The notes: a model not told the origin generated them from the sequence alone. Positions 2,083 through 17,500 are shown, counted from the first letter of the stretch. The stretch is 64,000 nucleotides of DNA from Paraphysomonas bandaiensis (GCA_965644295.1 CBFFRP010000074.1:123140-187139); one strand, 5' to 3'. Made by a program: numbers and translations.

Positions 2083-5000
2083 CTATATTGTTGTGGAACA
2101 CATTTGTGCCTGCAACAGCTCCTTCGTCACTCCGACTTCTTCAAGTTGTAATTTCACATCATAACTACACCTCATCATGTTGTTCAGGCAACATGCAGCT
2201 GCCATCCTGCAAACGGGCAGGTCACGTTTAAGTACCCCCACAATAGAGCACAAACCGCCAGCCGTAACTACCAGCAGTGCAATATCCCGTTCTGTTTTCA
2301 CCATATGCCCGAGGGTACAGAGTGCTGCTTCACAGCAGCAGTCACTATTACTTTCAACTAATTTTATGAGTGGATCTATAGCATCTCTCAAAGCAATGTT
2401 CGAACCACAGTAACTAACCAAACTATTTAATACCCACGCCGCCTCGGCCTTGCACTTTTCAGATCCACGCTTCAGCAGTTCGATAAGTACTTCAATTCCA
2501 CCACAATCAACAATATGCATAATACTCAGACTGTGATACCAAGTCAGGCATCGCAGTGCACTCACTGCTCTTTCTGCCGTGCTCTGACCAGCGGACAGCA
2601 TATCAACCAGGGGGGCTGTGGCATCAGACTTCACAATCGCACTACGACTGAAATCATCGTATGCCAAGATCCTAACCAGATCTGCGGCATCCTCACGTAT
2701 ATTTAATGCACAGCAGTGATTGCGTAAAATATCTACCACAACCTCAAGCACCCCTTCATCCTCTACCACGGATCGCTTAAGAGCAGTTGTACAGCCAACG
2801 CAGAGAAGGTAAAGTGGGCGGAGAGCGGACGGCCTGTTCCTATCTCCTACACGAAGGAGGTTTACAAGAGCAGGAATTGCCCCAACATCAATCATCCGAG
2901 CCTTGCCTTCTGGATCAGAGGCCAGGGCTCCAATCGCGTCCGCAGCTGCTTGTCCACAATCACCGACACTGCACCACAACATACGCACTAGATGGACATG
3001 AACTCCAATTTCAAACGCAGGGAAAGCAGTCTGAGGGACGCGATATATTAATGACTGAAGTAAATTCGCACTTCTAGCACATAACGTACAATCCTCGCCT
3101 TGGAGTAAGACCCCAATGGAGAATAACAAAGATTCGTGACCCATACTCAAAGCATTTTCTTCCTCGCTAGCGAGAATCCTCAGAGCCTCTAAGGAATCCA
3201 GTTGAGCGTCTCGTGATCCATGCAGAAGCATTGACACAAGGTCAAATCCCCCCTCTTGAAGCTCATGAAATGTAAATCCGTCTGCGGCCATCTTGGTAGC
3301 ACCCACACCATCTAGTCGCCTTTGGGCTGCAAGCACAGACAAAGCCACACCAGCGGATCGTAGCAGCGGAAGAGTAAAACCTGCCTGCCGTAATTCTGTG
3401 GGGCCAATGTTTTGAAGAGTCCAAGCAGCGGCCTCTTTGCATGCTTCTGATCCAGTACGTAAAAGGCGCAGAAGAGGGCCGAGTGCACCAGAGTCAACTA
3501 CTATCATACAATTTGCAGCGTCACATGCAAGACTACAGAGTGCCCATGTCGCCGCTTCCTTTGACGAATCCGAACCACAACTAAGCATTTGGATAAGCAT
3601 TGGAATAGCAGCACCTCCTGCAGTAACAATTTCGACATCAGCACACCCATGTGTCAGATATCTGAAAGCCCATGCACAGGCTTCCCGAACCCTGCCCTGT
3701 CCCTTGCGCACCACATGAACCATTACGTCAATTCCATTCTCCTCCTTCAGAATACGCCTATTTTCATCCTCGGATATCAAACTCCCAAGTACCCACACTG
3801 CTGCCTCGCACCACCTATTCAGATATATTTCAGTAAAATAGTACACCTGTCAACTCAACTGATCACCTTTCGGTATTCTCATTGTCACGAATAATAGAAA
3901 GAAGTCGTGTAATAGCACCAGCGTTGCCGATGGCAACTTTATTCTCTTTATTACATGCAAGTCCACCTAATGCACTAGCGGTAGCTTCATTCAATTGAGT
4001 GCTAGATTCAGGTCCCAGAATTGCCACCAGTCTATCAACTGCTCCCAATTCACATACTTTTTCAACATTCTCTTCGTCACACGCTAAATTTCTCAAAGCC
4101 CAAGCTGCGGCTTCTTGGCAACCTTCCGACGTGCTACTTAACAATGAAACTAAAGGCTCAATAGCACCCGCTGCCGCAATCGAAACCATATTTTCACAAT
4201 CACATGCGAGATTACACAGTGCCCTGGCAGCTGCTTCCTCAAATCTAAAACACCGTGTAAGCATATCAAAGTGTCCTCATGAAGAATTACCTAACATTGC
4301 CGTGGGAAAGGAGTTGAACCAAGGGCTTTATTGCCCCAGCACTCGCAATCACTGATACAATGTTACTATCACAAGCCAGATTGCAAAGAGCTCGTGCAGC
4401 AGACTCTTTAAAGCAGTCAGTACCGTTAAGCAACTGGTCTACCAGCGGGTCAACTGCACCGGCTAAAGCAATCGCTGTCATATTAGCAGCGTTATCTCGC
4501 GCCAAGCTCCGCAATGCCCAGGTTGAAGCATCTTTGCAACTATCACCCCCCCCACGGAGTAGGTCCACGAGAGCAGGGATAGCCCCCGCATCTGCAACCT
4601 GGACTTGGCTCTCACTGTTACAGGCCAGTGCTCCAATAGCCGCTGCGGCTGCTAAACAGCATTCGCTCACTTCTGAACGTACCATATGTACCAGGGGGTC
4701 GAGAACTCCGGCGGCAATAATTTCGTCCTCGTTGCTTTCGTCACAAACGAGTTCGTGTATACAGCGTGCAGCGTCGATACGCAAGGCATCATCGCTTCCC
4801 CTCAACATAGCCAACAAGTCGAAACCAGCATCGACAATCTCACTGTATGTGAATCCATCAGTAGCCATATCACAAGCGCTGGCTCCGTCAAGCCGGCGCT
4901 GTGCAGCAAGTACCGATAGTGCGATGCCACCTGACATACGAAGTTCCGCGAGTGTAAACCCAGCGTACTTGTCGTCCCCTAAAGAGAAACCAGCATCACG

Positions 5001-7958
5001 GAGACAATCGATCGTAAACCCTACATATTTGATCAACACGCGACTCAGTAAGATGATATGTATGTACTACCTGCACCAATTAGTTGTGCCGCTGAAAAAC
5101 CACCCAAGCGAAGTTCTTTCGCCGTAAACCCTTCTTGCTTGAGAGCATCAATAGTTACACCACTCTGACGTAATTCACATAAAAACCACTCCGGCCGCTC
5201 AGAATTGGATACACCAGTGCTACGTTTGTCGACGATCTCCACATGACTGGCAGATGATGAATCCACTTCACTGACAGAGTCCACATTCTCTTGGCTAGGT
5301 GAACCTCCCCAAGCACCAGAGTATAACATACTCGTGCTCTTTGAAACAGAGCGCTGTGGTATTTCTTTTCCTTCGAGAAGAATCCCTTCGTCATTAAAAT
5401 CCGCGCAGAGATAGGCCATTAATTCACGGGCAGCATTCTCAACAACACATAAATCCTCAACTATACAAGTTCTCAGTTCAGAGCAAACTTCCGGGATGTT
5501 TCCATCGTTGTCGTTCATATAGCGATCCAGCCCTACGAAGCAAAAATACATCAAGATAAAAATAATATATTGCCTTTAAAAATACTACCATGATCAATAC
5601 ACGACGACAAATCTTCAATGGATATTAAAAACTGTTCACGAGTGAGTATAGTGATGAGCGCACTAGACAGCTGGTGCATATTAAACTTTATCACGGCATT
5701 GCTGCAATTAGTAAAATCGAATTCCACTGTTACACACCCTCCTGGTCGGGACAACGATGTAAACGAGTTCACGCAATGTAACATGTCTTCCAAAGCATCA
5801 GAAAGCTTAGTTTTAACCTGTTCATGAACTGCGTCAGCTAAAAATGAAAGGAGTCCAGTGGAAGATCCATCCAAGCTCGTTCCACTGGTGTCAAACCTTC
5901 CGAGTCTACATGCAGAGGAGTCCTGACGCCATAGTTGTAACAGATTACTTCTCCACACGGTGCATGCCCTGTACAGCCATCGATTAACAGTTAAACCAAA
6001 ATCACTGTATATTTTTGCCTGGTGAGACTGGAACGGCATTCTTCTATCAGTGAATTTCGTACGGAATCAATATATCCATCTACAGAATTGCCAGGCAGGA
6101 GACAGTCTTTGATATATATATCGTCGCGTAAGACAAGACGAGATATGTTTTGCTGGAAGGTATGTAATACTTCAGTACCATAAATCTGACACAGGCATGA
6201 AAAATTATTTGATACAATATCCCGGCAAGCTCGAGATGTGACTTGAACGAAATCCTTCGAACTCAATGTGTACATCGAAGTTGCTATTATATCCTAACAT
6301 ATGCATAAGCTGTTGCCATCACTTTAAAGTAGGTACCTTTTGCTTATTGCTATCACAAGGTGGTGCGGGCAATCCAATATCAGCGTACATTTTCAAAAGT
6401 TTTTCATACTCGTCAACAAGAAGGCGTAGAAGTCTAGGTACCCATGATTCCCGCAATGAGGACAGGTACATATGTCCCATCAAACTAACAAGAGCCTCAC
6501 AAGTCGCCCGGCCACTTCGGACTGCGTCTTCAAATTCGTTAGACATGAAACACATAGTTTCCTCAACTGCTGTCCTGAGCATGTTGGTATAACGCCAGTT
6601 CTCTTCATCATGCTTCGAATTGACAGTACTTCCTTCGGAAGGCGGTACTACAGAAGTAAATAAGTATCCGTGTTGGAGATCATCATCACACCCATGTGAT
6701 GCATCTCTAGAATCTAAACCCCATCGAACAGCGAACAAGTCATTTTTACTTCTAAGCAAGAACTTATCACATTTCGTTATGACTCCAATAGTGCGGTCCT
6801 ACTCATAATTATACAAAATACACAATAACATTATAGACAGTTCACCTGAAGGTGAAGTCCTCTTACTGCATCAAGAGCGCATGAATGCCGCACTTTATCC
6901 TCATCTGACTCAGTTACGGCAATGTACATACAATTAGGGAACATAAGCACATGGTTATCTAAAATCTTCAAGCGGTCACTTCTCAGCTCCTTCCAGTCCC
7001 GGTCACTGAATACAGAAGTTGTGTTGGGTGAATCGGGGACAGTTGTCGGCAGTAATCCAGGAAGATCGACTAAATCAATAGTTGGTACTGAAGGCGAATA
7101 AAAGTGAACAACAATGGCGCGGTCAATGCACACTTCATAAGGCCGTACGACAACTGCCACAGATGAGACGTCATCTGCATTCGTGTTACTGTCACCGTCT
7201 TGTGAATGTATCGTCGTCAACGATTCCCGACGGCGGCACTTCGCCACAGTCTCCCGTACAAGTACATCGCGCATAGTATCCGCTATGATAGAATGTGCAC
7301 TTTCAAGTGTAGGAATTACAACTGCATCGCCTATCTGAACCTACATGTAGTGCACAATCATCCGACAAAAAGTGCACAATTATCCACATACTTTGCGGCT
7401 AGTATCGATTACTCTCAGTATCGGGCTGGAACTCTCAGGGGCATAACGGAGCTTGACTATGAGTGGCATACACGTCTCTTTCATGGGCCCACAGGGAAAT
7501 AATGAATACATGACGAGCCTCTCTAACAATGAACTTTTACCGCTTCCTATCTCTCCAATAACTGCAAACTGAGGAACATTCCACTCAGAACATGATTCCC
7601 GAATATAGGGTGGAATAATCTCAAAGATCTTTACTAATTTGCGCAAAGATACAATGCGATTACAATCTTTATTCAGTTGTGTTCGTGTGATATCAGTACA
7701 CCTCCTGTATCTATCTAACTCAGATGTCAGAGCATACATCTCTTTCTTTAACTCATCATTTGATATCAGTTCAGTTGATATCTCACATCCAGTTAAAGGA
7801 GAGGTATAGGGACGATTATTAGATTCACATACAACAAACCATTTCATAATAGTTTCTTTAGAGTATGTGTATCCATCCTCTGCTATAACAGGATCAGTGA
7901 AAATATCTTGACTTATAGGATCAATATACTTGTGAATTGATGGAAGTATAGATGACAT
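2083..7958 (-). CDS. U-box + dynamin-like GTPase + LxxxGF repeats + armadillo-repeat protein (9 exons, ~1,800 aa)
   Basis: N-terminal U-box (YIDPISQDIFTDPVIAEDGYTYSKETIMKWF...SPLTG). Dynamin-type motifs: G1 PQFAVIGEIGSGKSSLLERL, G2 Thr in ETCMP, G3 LVDLPGL, G4 RTIGVITKCD. Many ARM repeats (EAAAWALRNLA, AGAIEPLVSLL). The ORFs join in frame through ~43-56 nt introns, e.g. 7341-7391, 6799-6845, 6294-6336, 5969-6018. Confidence 0.85.
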
Positions 7959-8030
7959 GTATGACTAACTGGATATAGTAACTAATACATTTAAGTCCCT
8001 TAGTTAGTTAGTGTAAGTTCATATGTATGT

Positions 8031-8130
8031 AGTGAAGTACAGTGAAGTGTAGTGAAGTACAGTGAAGTGTAGTGAAGTGCAGTGAAGTGTAGTGAAGTGC
8101 AGTGAAGTGTAGTGAAGTGCAGTGAAGTTA
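8031..8130. repeat. Decamer tandem repeat (AGTGAAGTNN)x10
   Basis: Ten consecutive AGTGAAGT+AC/GT/GC/TA units, directly visible. Confidence 0.95.
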
Positions 8131-9715
8131 GTAGAAGAATAGAATACGTATACTTTGATATCTTCACTTCACTATATATATATATGTATATAGAGGATAC
8201 AAAGAAGTATTATATATAGACTTCAATATAAACAACTGAACACACTTCTTCTTCTTCTTTACATACTTCAATGTAAAGTATGTGATAACACAGTCATTAT
8301 AATCGTGTCTAGAATGTCTTTGTGTTTTGTCTGTGGACGAGACGAGATCATTCATACGAAGTTTGATTGCTGTACATACATTGTGTATAGGTACGAAGGC
8401 ATACCTACGTACGAACCCATATGAACAGGAGTACAAGTCCAGGAAGAAAACTGGAAATCCATGTTTTTTTACGTAATATTTTTATAGGGACTTTATCAAA
8501 TATCCCACATTATTATTCAAATTTCACCATAAAACACCTAGTTTTCGTATCTGAGAATCGACACTACTGTTCCTATTCCTATACACTGCTGCTCGATTCC
8601 ATTGCACATGTGTCCATATACATGTCCACAATCGCTCATACCACTCCCATCAGTTCACTTGAATAAGTTACATATCTCACAATATCTAACTCATCATGAC
8701 ACGATTTACTCCATATATTCCCACCACGATAATAGAAGTATCAACTAACTCATTCCATCATATGACAGTTTCCAGTTTCGCATGATATCCATACACTCCT
8801 TTATATATATGTATATATATCTGTACTTCTTACTTTACAATGTGGTGAATGAAATTCACTCAATCATGTGTGATATACGCGGTGTTTCATAACTCAGTCT
8901 GGTCTGTGTATCCTATCCTGTGATCTGTTACTGCCTTTTATTGAACATTAAATATTGAGACCCATTTAAACTATACGGGGTGATATTTTGCTTTTAAGTA
9001 GCATGCAATAAACACCTCAATTATATGAAAGATCCATGAAGAAGTACCATAAACGGATGTGACACTATTCAAAGTATACATAGAATACATTATTCTCGCG
9101 ATTATTAACTTTGCAAAAACTAATACACAAAGTGCTTAAATTATGATCTCAAAGCATGAGCATTGGTTACCTTGACTATAACGTTGGCAGTTTGTGCAGT
9201 AAGTTTAATAGATAATTAGAAATAGTATATTATCTATCTCTCTCATATCAAGTCAATTAAAGAACTCATTGCTTGAAGCGTTTAGTTCGTTTTTGTTGTT
9301 CCATTTCCTGGATGTTGTAGAAACTATTTGTACTCATGTACTTCAGTAGAGTGTGACTAGATATAAGATATAAATTCGACTATACAATACTCTCTTTCAA
9401 ACTACTATAATGCCAGCAGCAATAAGCATATAATCTTTATGCTACCTATCGCTCCAGGATTCTTCCTTAGTCGAATTTCTCTGCTTCATTAGTAGCTCCA
9501 CATCGTTCTAAATAATATTCAACAAATTGTTTGTATTACTCACTGTATTGAGTAGTCGTATAATTTAAAGTTCATAAAATACCCAAAATTTGGCCAATTT
9601 ATTTACATTAAGTATAGAACTCTACGGTGTGCTGCATTAAAAACCCACACCCTCAATATATATTATGCACATCTCCATATAATATTCACAAATCGACATA
9701 TACTATTCGTAAAAG

Positions 9716-12442
9716 CTATCTGTCACTCGAATCAAGAATTTCTTTTGTCGCATTTTCTAAGCTGGATATCATGTCCATGATATTCCCTTTGGGTAATACT
9801 TGATCCGAAATGCCTGTACCATCGCTAGCACCTAAATCATCTTCATTACAGCTGCTTTCTAGAAGTTCGTTTTGTGCTCTGGATTCCATGGTCTTCCTGC
9901 ACAGCTCATCTCTTTCGCTATTTTTAGGACGCTTATGCACATTACCTTTCTTCGGTACTTTCACTTCTCGTTTTCTCTTTCTGAAACTTCCAACTTCACT
10001 AAGTTCTTCCTGTGCAGCCTCATCATCCATTACTTCTCTGGTGGCCGCTTCAAGCTGGTCTAATATACTCAACGAATCACCATTCCTGTTGCCAGATAAT
10101 TCCTGTGGGGTTGTTTGCGCAGTGAGCAGACGGACGGATGATTCAGTGGGGAGCATACTGGTGGTCGAGCTGTTACCTACACTGCGCGAAAACTCACCCA
10201 TTACTTCCTGGGTACTTCTCTCAAGCGCCTCCAACACATCACCACCACCCATACTCGCTGGTGCAACAAATGCGTGAGATGCTTTTGGCGCTCTATCACT
10301 AGGTGTGTTCGAGGTAGTACGACGTTTACTCTTCCCAGGTGCTCCTGTGCGAGTCTTTTTCTGCTTCTGAGCACGCGATGAAGGACGTTGGTTATCAGTG
10401 AATTCTTCTGATGGACTAACTCCCTCCCGCACAGCCTCATCATCCATTACTTCTCTGGTGGCCGCTTCAAGCTGGTCTAATATACTCAACGAATCACCAT
10501 TCCTGTTGCCAGATAATTCCTGTGGGGTTGTTTGCGCAGTGAGCAGACGGACGGATGATTCAGTGGGGAGCATACTGGTGGTCGAGCTGTTACCTACACT
10601 GCGCGAAAACTCACCCATTACTTCCTGGGTACTTCTCTCAAGCGCCTCCAACACATCACCACCACCCATACTCGCTGGTGCAACAAATGCGTGAGATGCT
10701 TTTGGCGCTCTATCACTAGGTGTGTTCGAGGTAGTACGACGTTTACTCTTCCCAGGTGCTCCTGTGCGAGTCTTTTTCTGCTTCTGAGCACGCGATGAAG
10801 GACGTTGGTTATCAGTGAATTCTTTTGATGGACTAACTCCCTCCCGCACAGCCTCATCATCCATTACTTCTCTGGTGGCCGCTTCAAGCTGGTCTAATAT
10901 ACTCAACGAATCACCATTCCTGTTGCCAGATAATTCCTGTGGGGTTGTTTGCGCAGTGAGCAGACGGACGGATGATTCAGTGGGGAGCATACTGGTGGTC
11001 GAGCTGTTACCTACACTGCGCGAAAACTCACCCATTACTTCCTGGGTACTTCTCTCAAGCGCCTCCAACACATCACCACCACCCATACTCGCTGGTGCAA
11101 CAAATGCGTGAGATGCTTTTGGCGCTCTATCACTAGGTGTGTTCGAGGTAGTACGACGTTTACTCTTCCCAGGTGCTCCTGTGCGAGTCTTTTTCTGCTT
11201 CTGAGCACGCGATGAAGGACGTTGGTTATCAGTGAATTCTTCTGATGGACTAACTCCCTCCTGTACAGCTTCATCACCCATTACTTCTCTGGTGGCCGCT
11301 TCAAGCTGGTCTAATATTCCCACACCGCTTAATTCACTCTTACCTTTGGGGCTGTCAGCTTTTGACCCTCGATTAGTGTGTGAGCTTTTCTTGGTTGCCT
11401 TGTTTCTAGTAGGAGGTGTAGTATGAATATTTACATTCTCTACCCACCTATTACTCTCATGTGTTGGGGAAATTGATTGCGATTGCTCTAGAACTTCCAG
11501 AGTACTTTTTTCTAGAGCCTCGAGAAATCCTATAGAACCTTCACTGTTAGCAGTGGCTGCAGTTTGAAGATCTTGGGTTTCTAACAAATTTTGAGGGTTC
11601 TTAGTACTGGTGTTATCTGAATTAGTATTCGAACCAAATAGGAACTCTCTCACACTTTCGTCCATTGTGGCAGGAAGGTTCAATCCTCCACCCTCGTCAT
11701 GTGCAGAACTCACAGGACATCGAGGAACCTTAAACCCTTCTCCTGTAGTGCTATCAGGACTACTTTCCACTATACTCGCCACCTGCTTCGAATTCTCTTT
11801 TATGTACTCGACATTACTCAATAACTCGCTGATATCTGGTCTCAATTGCGTGCGAACTCTCAGCAATGTGGCCACTCTATACAAGGAAGGACCGCCAGTA
11901 TAAGCAGCAAAGTGAAATGCACTAGAATTAAGGAGTTTATGAAAAATACTGGATGCATGATACCCCAGGCCATTTCGAAATACATCTATCTGCTCATATG
12001 CAACAAGTAGCTCTGCCCAGATCTCTGGTGACACCCGAATTTTAATGTTCTGATGACATTGTTGGCGAGTGAAATATAGCGTGTATAACGTGTAGAAAAC
12101 GCCAATATTCCATATTAATTTACCAATCCTAACATCATATTCATCTAAGAGGCCAGTGGGACATGTGTGTAACAAGTCCAGTGCTGTATTCAATGATTAT
12201 ATACGTCTATTAGTAACAATTCATAACTTACCACATTGAAATAAACACTGTATAAAGAGATTAGAATCAGCACGATTAGGGCATAAGTGGTGGATTTCAG
12301 ATAACCCTAGTTCAACCCATACAGTTTTAAACCCTGGAAACTGAAGATTTCTAGAGGATATAAATCTAGATAGAAGGGATGTGAGATCTTCAGTTATGGC
12401 ATCCCTTATGACACTAGTCTCTTGAGTTGGCCACACTTGCAT
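9716..12442 (-). CDS. SNAPC1: snRNA-activating protein complex subunit 1 (SNAP43)-like, with long repetitive C-terminus
   Basis: EDLTSLLSRF..FPGFKTVWVELGLSEIH and IGVFYTLYTLYFTRQ..KIRVSPEIW resemble the SNAP43 domain. A 48-nt GT-AG intron at 12184-12231 joins the two ORFs in frame. Confidence 0.7.
10015..11317. repeat. 417-bp (139-aa) coding tandem repeat, ~3.1 near-identical copies
   Basis: Units start at 10015, 10432, 10849 and 11266 (partial). The ORF track shows repeated ORFs offset by 417. Confidence 0.97.
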
Positions 12443-12862: not shown

Positions 12863-13931
12863 ATGCAATCAGCTGTTCTTATTATTAGTAATAATTCTAT
12901 TACTACTAACTCATATTTAAACCTCATCACTCTACCTCATCCCAAGTATGGCCCAATAGAGTTCTTAGACTGCGATGGGACACTATATGAGATACAATCA
13001 ACACAACCTCGTAAATATGGTAGTTGGTTTATTAATCAAAGAATTTTATCAGATTCTTCTCATATTATTGCAACTAAAATTGATCCAAAGTATTTAATAT
13101 TACCATATTTAGAATCATCTGGACAGAGATATAGTCCACTCAGTCAGATTGTTGTTCCTGTTGAAGGATGTGAACGTATCAATCTTGATAAATGTACTAC
13201 TTGGAATTTAGAAGATATGTGTGATGTGAATGATAAATTGGGAGATGATATGATTTTGTATCGCTTCAATGCGGACAAAGCATTAGCGTGGCTAACGAAC
13301 AGAGTTAATAAAACTGCATCAGTTTTACGCAAGCGACGGATTGCCCAACTATCGAAGAGTTTAACTGTGAGCACGTTTGACAGTTCCGTTCAATCCGGAA
13401 AATCAAATGGTATATCAGCGACTACAAGGGAGAACGGTGGTAAACTATTGTTGCTGTGTTTTACTACATTTCTAAATATGTTGTAGAATCAGTTACTGAG
13501 GAGGACATACGGACAGCACTGAGTATAGTCACCGATTACTTGACAGATAGTATGGCCGCACGCCTCTTGGAAAGTTTTAATGTAACCGAGGAAAGTATCG
13601 CACCTAAGCCTAGTTCTATGAAGCGCAAGGCAGACTGGGAAACTGCTCTTGAGGTATGCCTACGTATATCTTCTACATCTGCGTTTTCACAGTTGCAATA
13701 TCTGGGCAGGTGGAAAAAGAAACAATGTCATACACTGCTAGTGTCACAACAACATCGATTACTACTGTCTCCCAAATAAACAACGTAAGCTAGTTTTCTT
13801 TCTCAACAATTGTTCTTATCGTCTATCAGGGAAATAAGGCGGGATCGGCTCCTCCAAAGAGTACAGGAAAGTTATCGAAACCCCCAATGAAAGGAGTACG
13901 AAGTATAACTAGTTTTTTTGCGAAGAAGTAG
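12863..13931 (+). CDS. RNASEH2B: Ribonuclease H2 subunit B (multi-exon)
   Basis: LPHPK...LYEIQ...SWFIN...ATKIDPKYLILPYL and YRFNADKALAWL. The last exon ends in the PIP-box-like KGVRSITSFFAKK* (TAG 13929-13931). Confidence 0.85.
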
Positions 13932-14517: not shown

Positions 14518-17500
14518 TCAACCAGTAGCGTCATCCACACTGGTGTTACTATCTCGGCGTGACTTTGGTCGCACATATTCTATTGGGGGTAACCGTTTTG
14601 AAGTCACCGATCCACGCAGAGCCCCACCATCGCCAGAATCTGTCACGTCATGCGCGTCAACACCACTGAGTGAGGAATTGACAGCATTAGATTCGTGTGC
14701 ACTGTCGACAGAGTTCAAACGGCATCTAAACTCATCACCATCTCCATGGGGCTCCATTATACTAACACTTTCCTTTTCCTTAACTGGCGGGGAATTGGCT
14801 TCACATGAAGTCATATTTGCCTCTCCTTCAACCGTATCGTCAAACCTGGTGACATCGACATATGTTGCATTTTTTTCGCTTTGCGTATTCTCGATCTCTT
14901 TACCAGTTGCTTCATTATCCTCATCTTCCGTCTTCTCTACTGCTTTTTCATCAACCCGCACGTCATTCCACCCCGATTTCACTCCTGCTAATGAATCCGC
15001 ACTGCGAAGGCGTTTCACACATCGTTCGATTGTATCCTGGCGTTCAGCATCCACATCGTTAGTATCGCCAATTGATGCAGATTGTTTTCCTTCAGCGATG
15101 TGCTCTTCCTGTTTTCTACCTTCCTGCTTGCGCCTCATCTGAAACTCCGAATCTCCCTTAAGTAGGGTTAGATTTCTTGATCGTCTTCTCTCCTCCGCAA
15201 CTTCGAGCTCCCCTTTCAGGGCATCATCACTCCCGTCATGTATCTTCACTTTCGGGCGCTCAAAAGACCCCAATGAGCTCATGCGTCGAAGGGCCTTTGT
15301 GGCACCGTTAAGAATACCAGAATTTTGTTGCGATCTTCTGAGTGCGCTGCTATCTTCAGTGTCTTTGCTTCCTACCTTACGAACCGCCTTTTTGAACTTT
15401 ATTCCCAGTTTCGAAGGAGTCTTTTCAAGGCTAAGCTTTTCAATGTTCTTCTTGTATGCAACCCCAATCAAGTTTATTAGCTCGAGGAATTCTGCAAAAT
15501 CTATCTGCCCGGACGAGTCTCTATCCACCTACACACACAGCCGTTATATCAAAACCGTGAATGATATATCGAAGCTATATATGCAGAGTCGTCAGCGCAC
15601 CATCATGAAAAGTGAGAATTGATCAGTTTCTTCTACCGACACAATTTCTAGAACAGGCTTGAGCTCCGTCATCTGTGAAAAAAGACATGTAACAAGTAGG
15701 TTTCTCATTAGATAATTTTCTTACGGTTAGTTTCCCATTTTGCCCGATGTCAATCAAGTCAAAAATCTCTAGAAGATTGTCAATAGTTGTGTCTCGTATA
15801 TTATGCTCTTTCTGGTTTTTCTTCACTTTCTCCCAAACCTCTTTCTCTTCCTTTATGCCTTCCTTAAGAAGATCCATCGAGGTAATAATAATACCAACGA
15901 AGAGCGACATCAGTACCATCACACCGAATATAACAAAAACAAAAAAGTACCTACGGGTAGGTTAATATTAGAACAAGTGGCACAAGACAAAACTGCAGAA
16001 CAGAACATTCAACTTACGCAGCTGCAAACCAGCCAAGTCCAACAGGCTCATTGCACTGAGAGTCATAATACTCTTCTCCCGAGTCATATCCGTAATAGTC
16101 GCAACCATACATATTGATACGAGCAGTCTCTGACCAATCGTCTAGCGAACACACCTACCAACAAGGACAAATATGTAAGTGTCGAGTCAATCCTACAAGT
16201 TATTGTACTACCCGAAACAGAGTCACAAATGCATAAAAGAGATTTCCAAAGTGCACAGGATCATTCGAACGAAAGAGTAACACCCCAGCGATGGCAAAAT
16301 GGAAGAAAAATATCAACATGAGCATAATCACATACACTAGGGCCTTAGCAGACGATGCTATGGCTTGCATGATTACGTTCAAATCAGCAATCCAATTTAA
16401 TAATCGAAGCAGTCTTAATATTCTGAGCACACGTAATAGGCCTACCAAACGAAAATATGAGTCACATACAACATCAACACTGAAATACTGTCAGTACCTA
16501 AGTATTTATCTCCCGGAAGACCGTTGGTGAAAATAGGGGCCCAAGTGGTAAGTACAAGCACACTGTCGAAAGAATTCCAACGGTCGTTAAAATAAGTCTT
16601 CACAGCAGGGTACGCCGCTAGCATTTTAAAGCATATATCCAATGAAAAGTACACCTGTAGTACAATCTGAACAATTTGTAGGCGTTGACTACCATTATAT
16701 TCTGGACGCTCCACCGTTACAATTTCAAGCATTGCAGCAAAAAACACAACTGATGCGAGAAGATTTTTATAGTATTTGTTCCCTGTAAGGTTTCGAGCAT
16801 ACACACTGTTCTTTTTTATGTCGCGTATATCGAACTCCGAGCAAAATTGCTTCGCAAGAGAATATGATTCCTTACGAAAGAGAGACTGCCGACAGTCACC
16901 AGGTTTCATCTTTATAGATGTCTCCTTGGCAGACTGTGCTCTCAACTGCTGCCTCGCATATTTTTCATTCTCACTCCACACTTGCTTCATTAGTAGTAAC
17001 AACATATCAGGGTCTGTAATGAGGGAGTTATCTTGCTTGCCCGTACTGAGAAGCGAGGCCGTCCTGCTAACCGATTGGTTGCCTTGTATTTCTCTAGCTA
17101 AATCTTCCTTCTCAAGAGTACTCAGGCGATCGTTAATTCCTGCCGTCACAGCCGCAACAGTGAGCGAGACTAATATGAACCCACACAGTAAAATAAAAGA
17201 TATAAATATGACAGTTGAAAGGACAGGGTTTCCTTGAGGTTCTGTGCACACAGGAAGATAAAGTGTTCCATATCTCTCTATGGTGCGTGGCAAATCAGTT
17301 GCGTTGCGGTCGACATATTGACTTGGATATGAATCGCACCCGTAGAAGTTGACATACATGATCACGCCCCAATTCTACGAAGAATAACAGTGTAAAATAA
17401 CGTATACGTGATTTACAAGTCATGATGTGCTGCATGTACAATTACGGTTGGGACGTACATCAAGTGTAGCCATAAAGAACAGAGTCCAAAGGCTCATTGC

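Follow-up and report, generated by a model that had tools for sequence, protein, structure and literature searches.

A gene joining a U-box, a dynamin-type GTPase and ARM arrays in Paraphysomonas bandaiensis, and its protist family

To our knowledge, RNF112 (also named ZNF179 or neurolastin) is the only characterized protein in which an E3 ubiquitin ligase is fused to a GTPase of the dynamin superfamily. According to its description, a RING is joined N-terminally to a dynamin-like GTPase, and the middle domain is three-helical and not of the dynamin/Mx type with stalk and GED (PMC12012479). Here, a different fusion is described from the ochrophyte stramenopile Paraphysomonas bandaiensis. The gene lies on the minus strand of a 64,000-nt stretch of DNA (GCA_965644295.1 CBFFRP010000074.1:123140-187139), referred to below as the window, and its product of 1826 residues unites a U-box, a dynamin-type GTPase, a helical region and two arrays of armadillo (ARM) repeats. 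The ochrophyte placement agrees with HSP90 of this genome, which is 100% identical to an MMETSP transcript and whose nearest named relatives are those of Ectocarpus (86%) and Ochromonas (85%). As in RNF112, an E2-recruiting E3 domain is found N-terminal of the dynamin-superfamily GTPase. In contrast, RNF112 carries a RING instead of a U-box, lacks a repeat tail and, in vertebrates, is specific to the brain. The two proteins represent independent convergence, and the fusion is not homologous.

Several other described systems resemble the window protein in part. Mx, Drp1, Dnm1 and Vps1 share with it the dynamin-type G1 to G4 motifs, the bundle signaling element (BSE), a four-helix stalk, a GED and the absence of a PH domain. 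Unlike them, the window protein has a U-box before BSE helix 1 and about 1050 residues of linker and ARM sequence after the GED, and its sequence identity to Mx/Drp1/Dnm1-type proteins is only 14–24%. Plant ligases of the PUB-ARM class (PUB12/13, SPL11 and PUB14) likewise combine a U-box and ARM repeats in one chain, and exon 9 of the window gene passes the cut-off of the ARM_PUB profile. In that class, the U-box is followed directly by a single ARM array, whereas about 875 residues separate the two in the window protein: about 770 residues of dynamin module and linker, followed by a decapeptide-like region. There are also two ARM arrays instead of one, with decapeptide-like helices between them. 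Finally, TRIM5alpha-type E3s, NLR/STAND proteins and Roco/LRRK proteins share with it, by analogy, a layout of effector, nucleotide-dependent oligomerizing switch and variable repeat tail. The switch of the window protein has a dynamin fold and is not homologous to the STAND NTPase or Roc-COR, and the B-box and coiled coil of TRIM proteins are absent.

The minus strand between 7958 and 2083 displays nine long pieces of open reading frame (ORF) in alternating frames, which are joined in frame by the removal of eight introns (Table 1). The spliced coding sequence has a single, terminal stop and remains open across all nine exons with neither stop nor frameshift, and the GC content over the gene is higher than that of its flanks. 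Contigs of four public runs were aligned to the 5876 bases of the gene; X1 and X3 resemble culture transcriptomes, X5 is a marine polyadenylated (polyA) metatranscriptome and X13 is of DNA type. All eight introns are present as joints in the RNA-type contigs of X1 and X3, and two of them are also seen in X5. In run X13, an uninterrupted and unspliced sequence with zero joints extends over the entire stretch, and this run thus behaves as DNA. For intron 4, the RNA joints rule out a GT-AG candidate at 6062..6019 in favor of a GC-AG intron at 6018..5969; the joint 5967/6018 skips 50 nt in both X1 and X3, with four letters ambiguous.

Continuity across the gene was assessed from the same contigs. 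One X1 contig of 4311 nt extends from exon 3 to beyond the stop codon and crosses six introns, the junctions between exons 1 and 2 and between exons 2 and 3 are bridged by further contigs, and the dynamin core passes into the ARM half within a single exon (exon 6). No single read of full length was seen. Taken together, these contigs lend no support to separate transcripts for the U-box/dynamin and ARM halves, a finding that would have spoken against the original prediction of one spliced gene encoding about 1,800 residues. That prediction also held that the G4 motif enters the protein only by splicing, and this agrees with the position of DRTIGVITKCD upstream of the first start codon of the ORF at 6319-6759. 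Several sets of culture data, as well as marine polyA metatranscriptomes, contain transcripts with at least 99% identity. The locus is a real, expressed, single nuclear gene.

The domain order predicted from the sequence (U-box, dynamin/Mx-type GTPase, helical region, ARM arrays) was reproduced by Pfam, by motifs and by a family profile in agreement. Pfam was run on the exon pieces, and family profiles and relatives were used for the rest, so the assignment of the stalk in the window protein is indirect. In addition to the U-box, Pfam recovers Dynamin_N in two parts (29.4 bits in exon 1, with a cut-off of 27, and 17.6 bits in exon 2, covering profile positions 62-139) and Arm in exons 7 to 9 at 72–121 bits. 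The U-box carries its signature, with the conserved core DPV...DG.TY....I..W...SP.T, and aligns to the family U-box consensus with high posterior; when the family profile is compared with the PDB, the nearest U-boxes are those of plant PUB12, LubX and CHIP. The G domain contains a dynamin-type G1 (GxxxxGKS), the G2 Thr, G3 (DxxG) and G4 (TKxD). A 36-residue insert (residues 222-257) corresponds to the gap between two stretches aligned to the family profile, and residues 258-770 align to profile positions 223-674, through the stalk and GED, with GED/BSE helix 3 (EVCSELR...) at residues 741-770. As a whole, the core (residues 7-770) scores 385 bits against the A3 profile built from 54 members.

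The tail has its own internal order. Its two decapeptide-like regions are built of GF[ST]xxELxxx units; the Pfam Decapeptide profile scores 36.4 bits in exon 6, below its cut-off of 45, and exceeds the cut-off in a paralog on contig C431. Residues 898-1177 resemble residues 1392-1715 (36% identity, E 5e-32), which identifies the tail as an internal tandem duplication, with approximately 9–10 repeats in each ARM array. Such repeats are tandem three-helix units of about 42 residues that build a superhelix. An AlphaFold2 (AF2) model of residues 1251-1826 is all-alpha, with a predicted local distance difference test (pLDDT) score of 86.4 that dips at model residues 148-155, in the second decapeptide-like region. 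The top Foldseek matches of this model are beta-catenin and designed ARM proteins (E 1e-12 to 1e-13). No convincing transmembrane segment was found in the 1826 residues, nor was a PH domain or other recognizable lipid-binding part, and the product is predicted to be cytosolic.

The original prediction knew of no described protein combining all three parts. In full-text searches of the literature, neither a U-box-dynamin fusion nor the decapeptide region was found described, and relatives bear database labels such as ‘hypothetical protein’, ‘vacuolar protein 8’, ‘EngB’, ‘WD40 repeat protein’ and ‘MX2’. The combination is not unique. An exhaustive search with a profile running from the U-box to switch I against 1.84 billion representatives gave 4801 matches at E<=1e-3, 484 clusters at E<=1e-10 and 71 at E<=1e-30, and at least three organisms besides this one have members with an ARM tail. 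As far as was found, the fusion family is undescribed but widespread. For 136 of the top 150 representatives, the alignment to the window protein includes both U-box and P-loop, and 72 of these 136 are at least 600 residues long. Dynamin_N was detected in all 54 long members and the U-box in 47 of them, and across 54–56 diverse members there is little or no variation in G1, the G2 Thr, G3 and G4. Named sources are the haptophyte Chrysochromulina tobinii, the synurophyte Mallomonas marina, the choanoflagellate Stephanoeca diplocostata and the dinoflagellate Symbiodinium, and a cluster of 84 members in the ESM Atlas is mostly from Haptophyta.

What follows the head is highly variable. Most of the 54 long members have no recognizable tail, and the remainder carry NHL (five), ARM (three), WD40 (two) or Ank (two); a further word search added a member with an LRR tail (P0058). 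The Symbiodinium protein (P0321) has the order Ank-U-box-dynamin, its name ‘MX2’ being a record label only. In Chrysochromulina-like haptophyte clusters (P0002, P0060 and P0305-P0311), heads that are 92–98% identical up to about residues 750-790 are followed by tails that differ in ARM number, that add Ank, Decapeptide or MIF4G, or that are missing; paralogs of recent origin, variation between strains or alternative gene models could account for this. The U-box-dynamin head defines a large, unannotated protist family in which the head is constant and the tail varies. The ARM tail looks secondary, since most relatives of the head are without ARM, and the window protein is the longest known member of the family and the most elaborate of those with ARM tails. 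One relative, P0316 (Logan/ENA, 1630 residues), has an ADP-ribosyltransferase (PF03496/PF01129, residues 65-258) in front of a U-box, dynamin and ARM, so that a single dynamin scaffold bears two distinct effectors that modify proteins.

Further members are found in the same genome. A search of its 62.6 Mb with exon 1 identified three paralogs with a U-box and a dynamin P-loop, on contigs C431, C520 and C439, for four diverged genes in all. The C431 gene (approximately 154500-164560, minus strand) encodes about 1530 residues with few introns and has the same U-box-dynamin-decapeptide-ARM order (Dynamin_N, 70.7 bits), while the C520 and C439 paralogs are without ARM. The raw C431 ORF reads through two in-frame introns, and because one of these splits the U-box, Pfam misses the domain there. 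A further U-box-dynamin-decapeptide-ARM gene, P0001, comes from an ENA assembly; its first exon was lost in the gene call, and the U-box lies just upstream. In a core tree, made with FastTree only and with several long branches flagged, the window gene, the C431 paralog and P0001 form a clade with support of 97, in which the window branch is long. The C431 gene is closer to P0001 than to the window gene, which places the duplication before the split of the two organisms. No one-to-one orthology of the housekeeping kind was seen, and the distribution of the family is patchy. A word-based search with the 1133-residue ORF from C431 gave two matches and was swamped by ARM proteins, making it uninformative on rarity. 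Viral contigs in IMG/VR, searched with the family P-loop pattern, yielded no U-box-dynamin gene, a weak indication of absence given that only one pattern was used; the sole confirmed viral-contig match (IMGVR_UViG_3300024243_000024) is to the ankyrin part of the query (residues 1050-1149).

The window sequence differs from the runs at 20 coding sites, of which 14 are nonsynonymous and six synonymous, giving a ratio of nonsynonymous to synonymous polymorphism (pN/pS) of about 0.7. In the core (residues 1-770) there are ten nonsynonymous and no synonymous differences, and in the tail four and six, respectively. These figures are hard to square with strong purifying selection and fit either relaxed constraint or diversifying selection. 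They might even suggest a lineage-specific fusion that is transcribed while decaying or already functionless, with the long terminal branch as a further sign of constraint having been lost. We consider this highly improbable. The frame of 5481 nt is intact, all splice sites are used, the catalytic motifs are preserved, transcripts occur in both culture and marine samples, and the architecture has been kept in the C431 paralog and in other organisms.

The kind of dynamin to which the family belongs was examined with the family profile and a structural model. Against the PDB, the profile matches Dnm1, Mx1, Mx2, Drp1, Vps1 and dynamin-1 over nearly their full length (E 2.6e-41 to about 1e-34), and profile positions 113-673 cover the G domain, BSE, stalk and GED. 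An AF2 model of the family member P0013 (pLDDT 83.5, predicted template modeling score 0.76) shows, in order, a U-box, a long helix, a disordered linker, a BSE helix, a G domain and a stalk, and Foldseek places it nearest to Drp1, dynamin and MxA/MxB. Profile and model together indicate that the head of the family is a classical dynamin module without a PH domain. The description ‘Mx-like’ in the original prediction is apt in a broad sense only, that of the dynamin/Drp1/Mx clade: Mx1 and Mx2 score no better than Dnm1, Drp1 and Vps1, and neither the Mx nor the Drp1 subfamily can be assigned.

With fission dynamins scoring about as well as Mx, the protein could be a housekeeping, membrane-remodeling dynamin-related protein that acts in fission or tethering of organelles or vesicles, with a Vac8-type ARM anchor and a U-box for turnover of itself or of neighboring fission factors. 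Haptophyte relatives are indeed named ‘vacuolar protein 8’ by JGI pipelines, and RNF112 is reported to affect endosome and mitochondrial morphology (PMC12012479). On the other hand, such a protein would have to act on membranes with no PH domain, transmembrane segment or recognizable lipid-binding part. Its genome already encodes canonical dynamins at C460 and C214, which are among at least 16 Dynamin_N matches and score much higher. A patchy family with diverged paralogs and interchangeable tails in place of one-to-one orthologs, together with a ratio of 14 nonsynonymous to six synonymous differences, is also unlike core fission machinery. On balance, a membrane-remodeling role is rather unlikely.

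We place roughly even confidence in the proposal that the protein is instead an E3 ligase gated by assembly and by GTP. According to this proposal, which draws on analogy with the systems described above, the ARM arrays would bind a target, as the ARM repeats of plant PUB ligases do, while the stalk would drive self-assembly and the G domains would dimerize across neighbors and hydrolyze GTP, as in dynamin, Drp1 and Mx. A helix and a flexible linker tether the U-box to the dynamin module, where it would hang on BSE helix 1, which is expected to move with the nucleotide state. From this placement, it would follow that the spacing, clustering and orientation of the U-boxes depend on assembly and nucleotide state, and that ubiquitination of the bound target, or of the ligase itself, may be switched on at sites of assembly.

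Several observations weigh against a GTP-gated ligase of this kind. Most family members are without a recognizable repeat tail, so the head must be able to work without a ‘sensor’. In RNF112, auto-ubiquitination reportedly does not depend on the dynamin-like properties of the protein (PMC12012479), and coupling between GTPase and ligase is thus not a given. Pfam Dynamin_M and GED gave no match in exons 3 to 5, and the stalk was assigned through the family profile and the model of a relative with 26% identity. The high nonsynonymous share, at only 20 sites, could equally reflect relaxed constraint and not diversifying selection.

The report on RNF112 also bears on another possibility, in which the dynamin module serves as an oligomerization scaffold only, the GTPase being irrelevant or lost, and the protein is in essence a multivalent E3 of the PUB-ARM type. 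The U-box and the ARM repeats are both nearest to plant PUB-type domains, and the G domain of the window protein carries its 36-residue insert and sits on a long branch. Set against this, the window protein has all of its motifs G1 to G4 intact, the G2 Thr included, and their near-invariance across the family argues for selection on nucleotide binding and hydrolysis. A pure scaffold seems improbable.

If the protein is an assembly- and GTP-gated ligase, surveillance or defense, directed at a virus, an intracellular bacterium or a damaged organelle, would be the likeliest class of role for it. It is plausible to read the chain as a sensor (ARM), a switch (GTPase) and an effector (U-box), as was originally suggested; variable tails on a constant head, four diverged paralogs, the lack of one-to-one orthology and the 14:6 strain differences fit this reading and a role in immunity, if circumstantially. 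A broader proposal is that the family as a whole acts as one system of innate immunity in protists, in which the logic of Mx is combined with that of TRIM. Interchangeable tails would recognize a viral, bacterial or damaged-self structure, stalk-driven and GTP-dependent polymerization around that structure would cluster the U-boxes, and ubiquitination of the target or of the polymer would restrict infection, for example by the giant viruses of marine algae. The relatives with ADP-ribosyltransferase, LRR, WD40 and NHL parts would then be variants of one system. The support for this proposal consists of tail variability reminiscent of NLRs, paralogy, patchy distribution and weak constraint, and we regard it as rather unlikely.

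GTPases of the dynamin superfamily and U-box ligases have each been studied in depth. As far as was found, the joining of a full dynamin/Mx-type machine and an E3 in one chain has been examined only once, in RNF112, while the family described here comprises several hundred clusters in ecologically dominant marine protists, including haptophytes, ochrophytes, dinoflagellates and choanoflagellates. Were GTP-dependent assembly to gate the ligase, this would constitute a new regulatory principle for E3 ligases, and the family would be a candidate for an ancient module of immunity or quality control in organisms that giant viruses infect. Being intact, transcribed both in culture and at sea, derived from an MMETSP strain and equipped with the richest tail, the window gene offers a good entry point to the family.

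Table 1. Features of the U-box-dynamin-ARM gene and its neighbors, in positions counted from the first letter of the window.
Feature	Position	Strand	Residues	Remarks
Coding region, whole	2083..7958	-	1826 in total	ATG at 7958, stop at 2085-2083; nine exons, 5481 nt
Exon 1	7392..7958	-	1-189	U-box, linker/BSE helix 1, P-loop, switch I
Exon 2	6846..7340	-	190-354	G-domain center, 36-residue insert, G3; joints on both sides
Exon 3	6337..6798	-	355-508	G4, G-domain end, BSE helix 2, stalk start
Exon 4	6019..6293	-	509-600	Stalk
Exon 5	5589..5968	-	601-726	Stalk
Exon 6	5071..5532	-	727-880	GED/BSE helix 3, Ser-rich linker, start of decapeptide-like region 1
Exon 7	4291..5020	-	881-1123	
Exon 8	3867..4244	-	1124-1249	
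Exon 9	2083..3814	-	1250-1826	Includes stop
Introns (8, 43-56 nt)	7341-7391, 6799-6845, 6294-6336, 5969-6018, 5533-5588, 5021-5070, 4245-4290, 3815-3866	-		RNA-type joints, with 7341-7391 seen in X1 and 6799-6845 in X1 and X3
Intron 4	5969..6018	-		50 nt, GC-AG; only non-GT donor, the other seven GT-AG
U-box	7737..7928	-	11-74	PF04564, 33.5 bits (cut-off 21.4)
G1/P-loop GEIGSGKSS	7530..7556	-	135-143	G, K and S invariant in family alignments
Switch I/G2 region KETCMPL	7461..7481	-	T162	Thr invariant in family alignments A2, A3 and A4
G3 DLVDLPG	7056..7076	-	278-284	D, P and G invariant in family
G4 TKCD in DRTIGVITKCD	6766..6777	-	362-365	At start of exon 3
BSE/stalk/GED region	5402..6660	-	401-770	Spans introns 3-5; family-profile alignment
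Ser-rich linker		-	771-845	In exon 6
Decapeptide-like region 1	4812..5176	-	846-950	Spans intron 6
ARM array 1	3394..4811	-	951-1390	Spans introns 7 and 8; Arm 74.9 bits (exon 7), 72.2 bits (exon 8)
Decapeptide-like region 2	3214..3393	-	1391-1450	Short-helix hinge between arrays
ARM array 2	2086..3213	-	1451-1826	Arm 121.4 bits; ARM_PUB 57.9 bits (cut-off 33)
SNAPC1-like gene	9716-12193	-		
RNase H2 subunit B (Ydr279)-like gene	12863-13486	+		
Ion-transport domain fragment	16442-17365	-		

The neighboring genes listed in Table 1 are unrelated to the U-box-dynamin gene and of housekeeping type, and they form no gene cluster with it. Between them and the gene, 70 nt upstream of the start codon, lies a minisatellite (8028-8137) made of 11 copies of the 10-nt unit TGTAGTGAAG, which can also be read as 5.5 copies of a 20-nt unit. 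Its position likely corresponds to the promoter or the 5' untranslated region.

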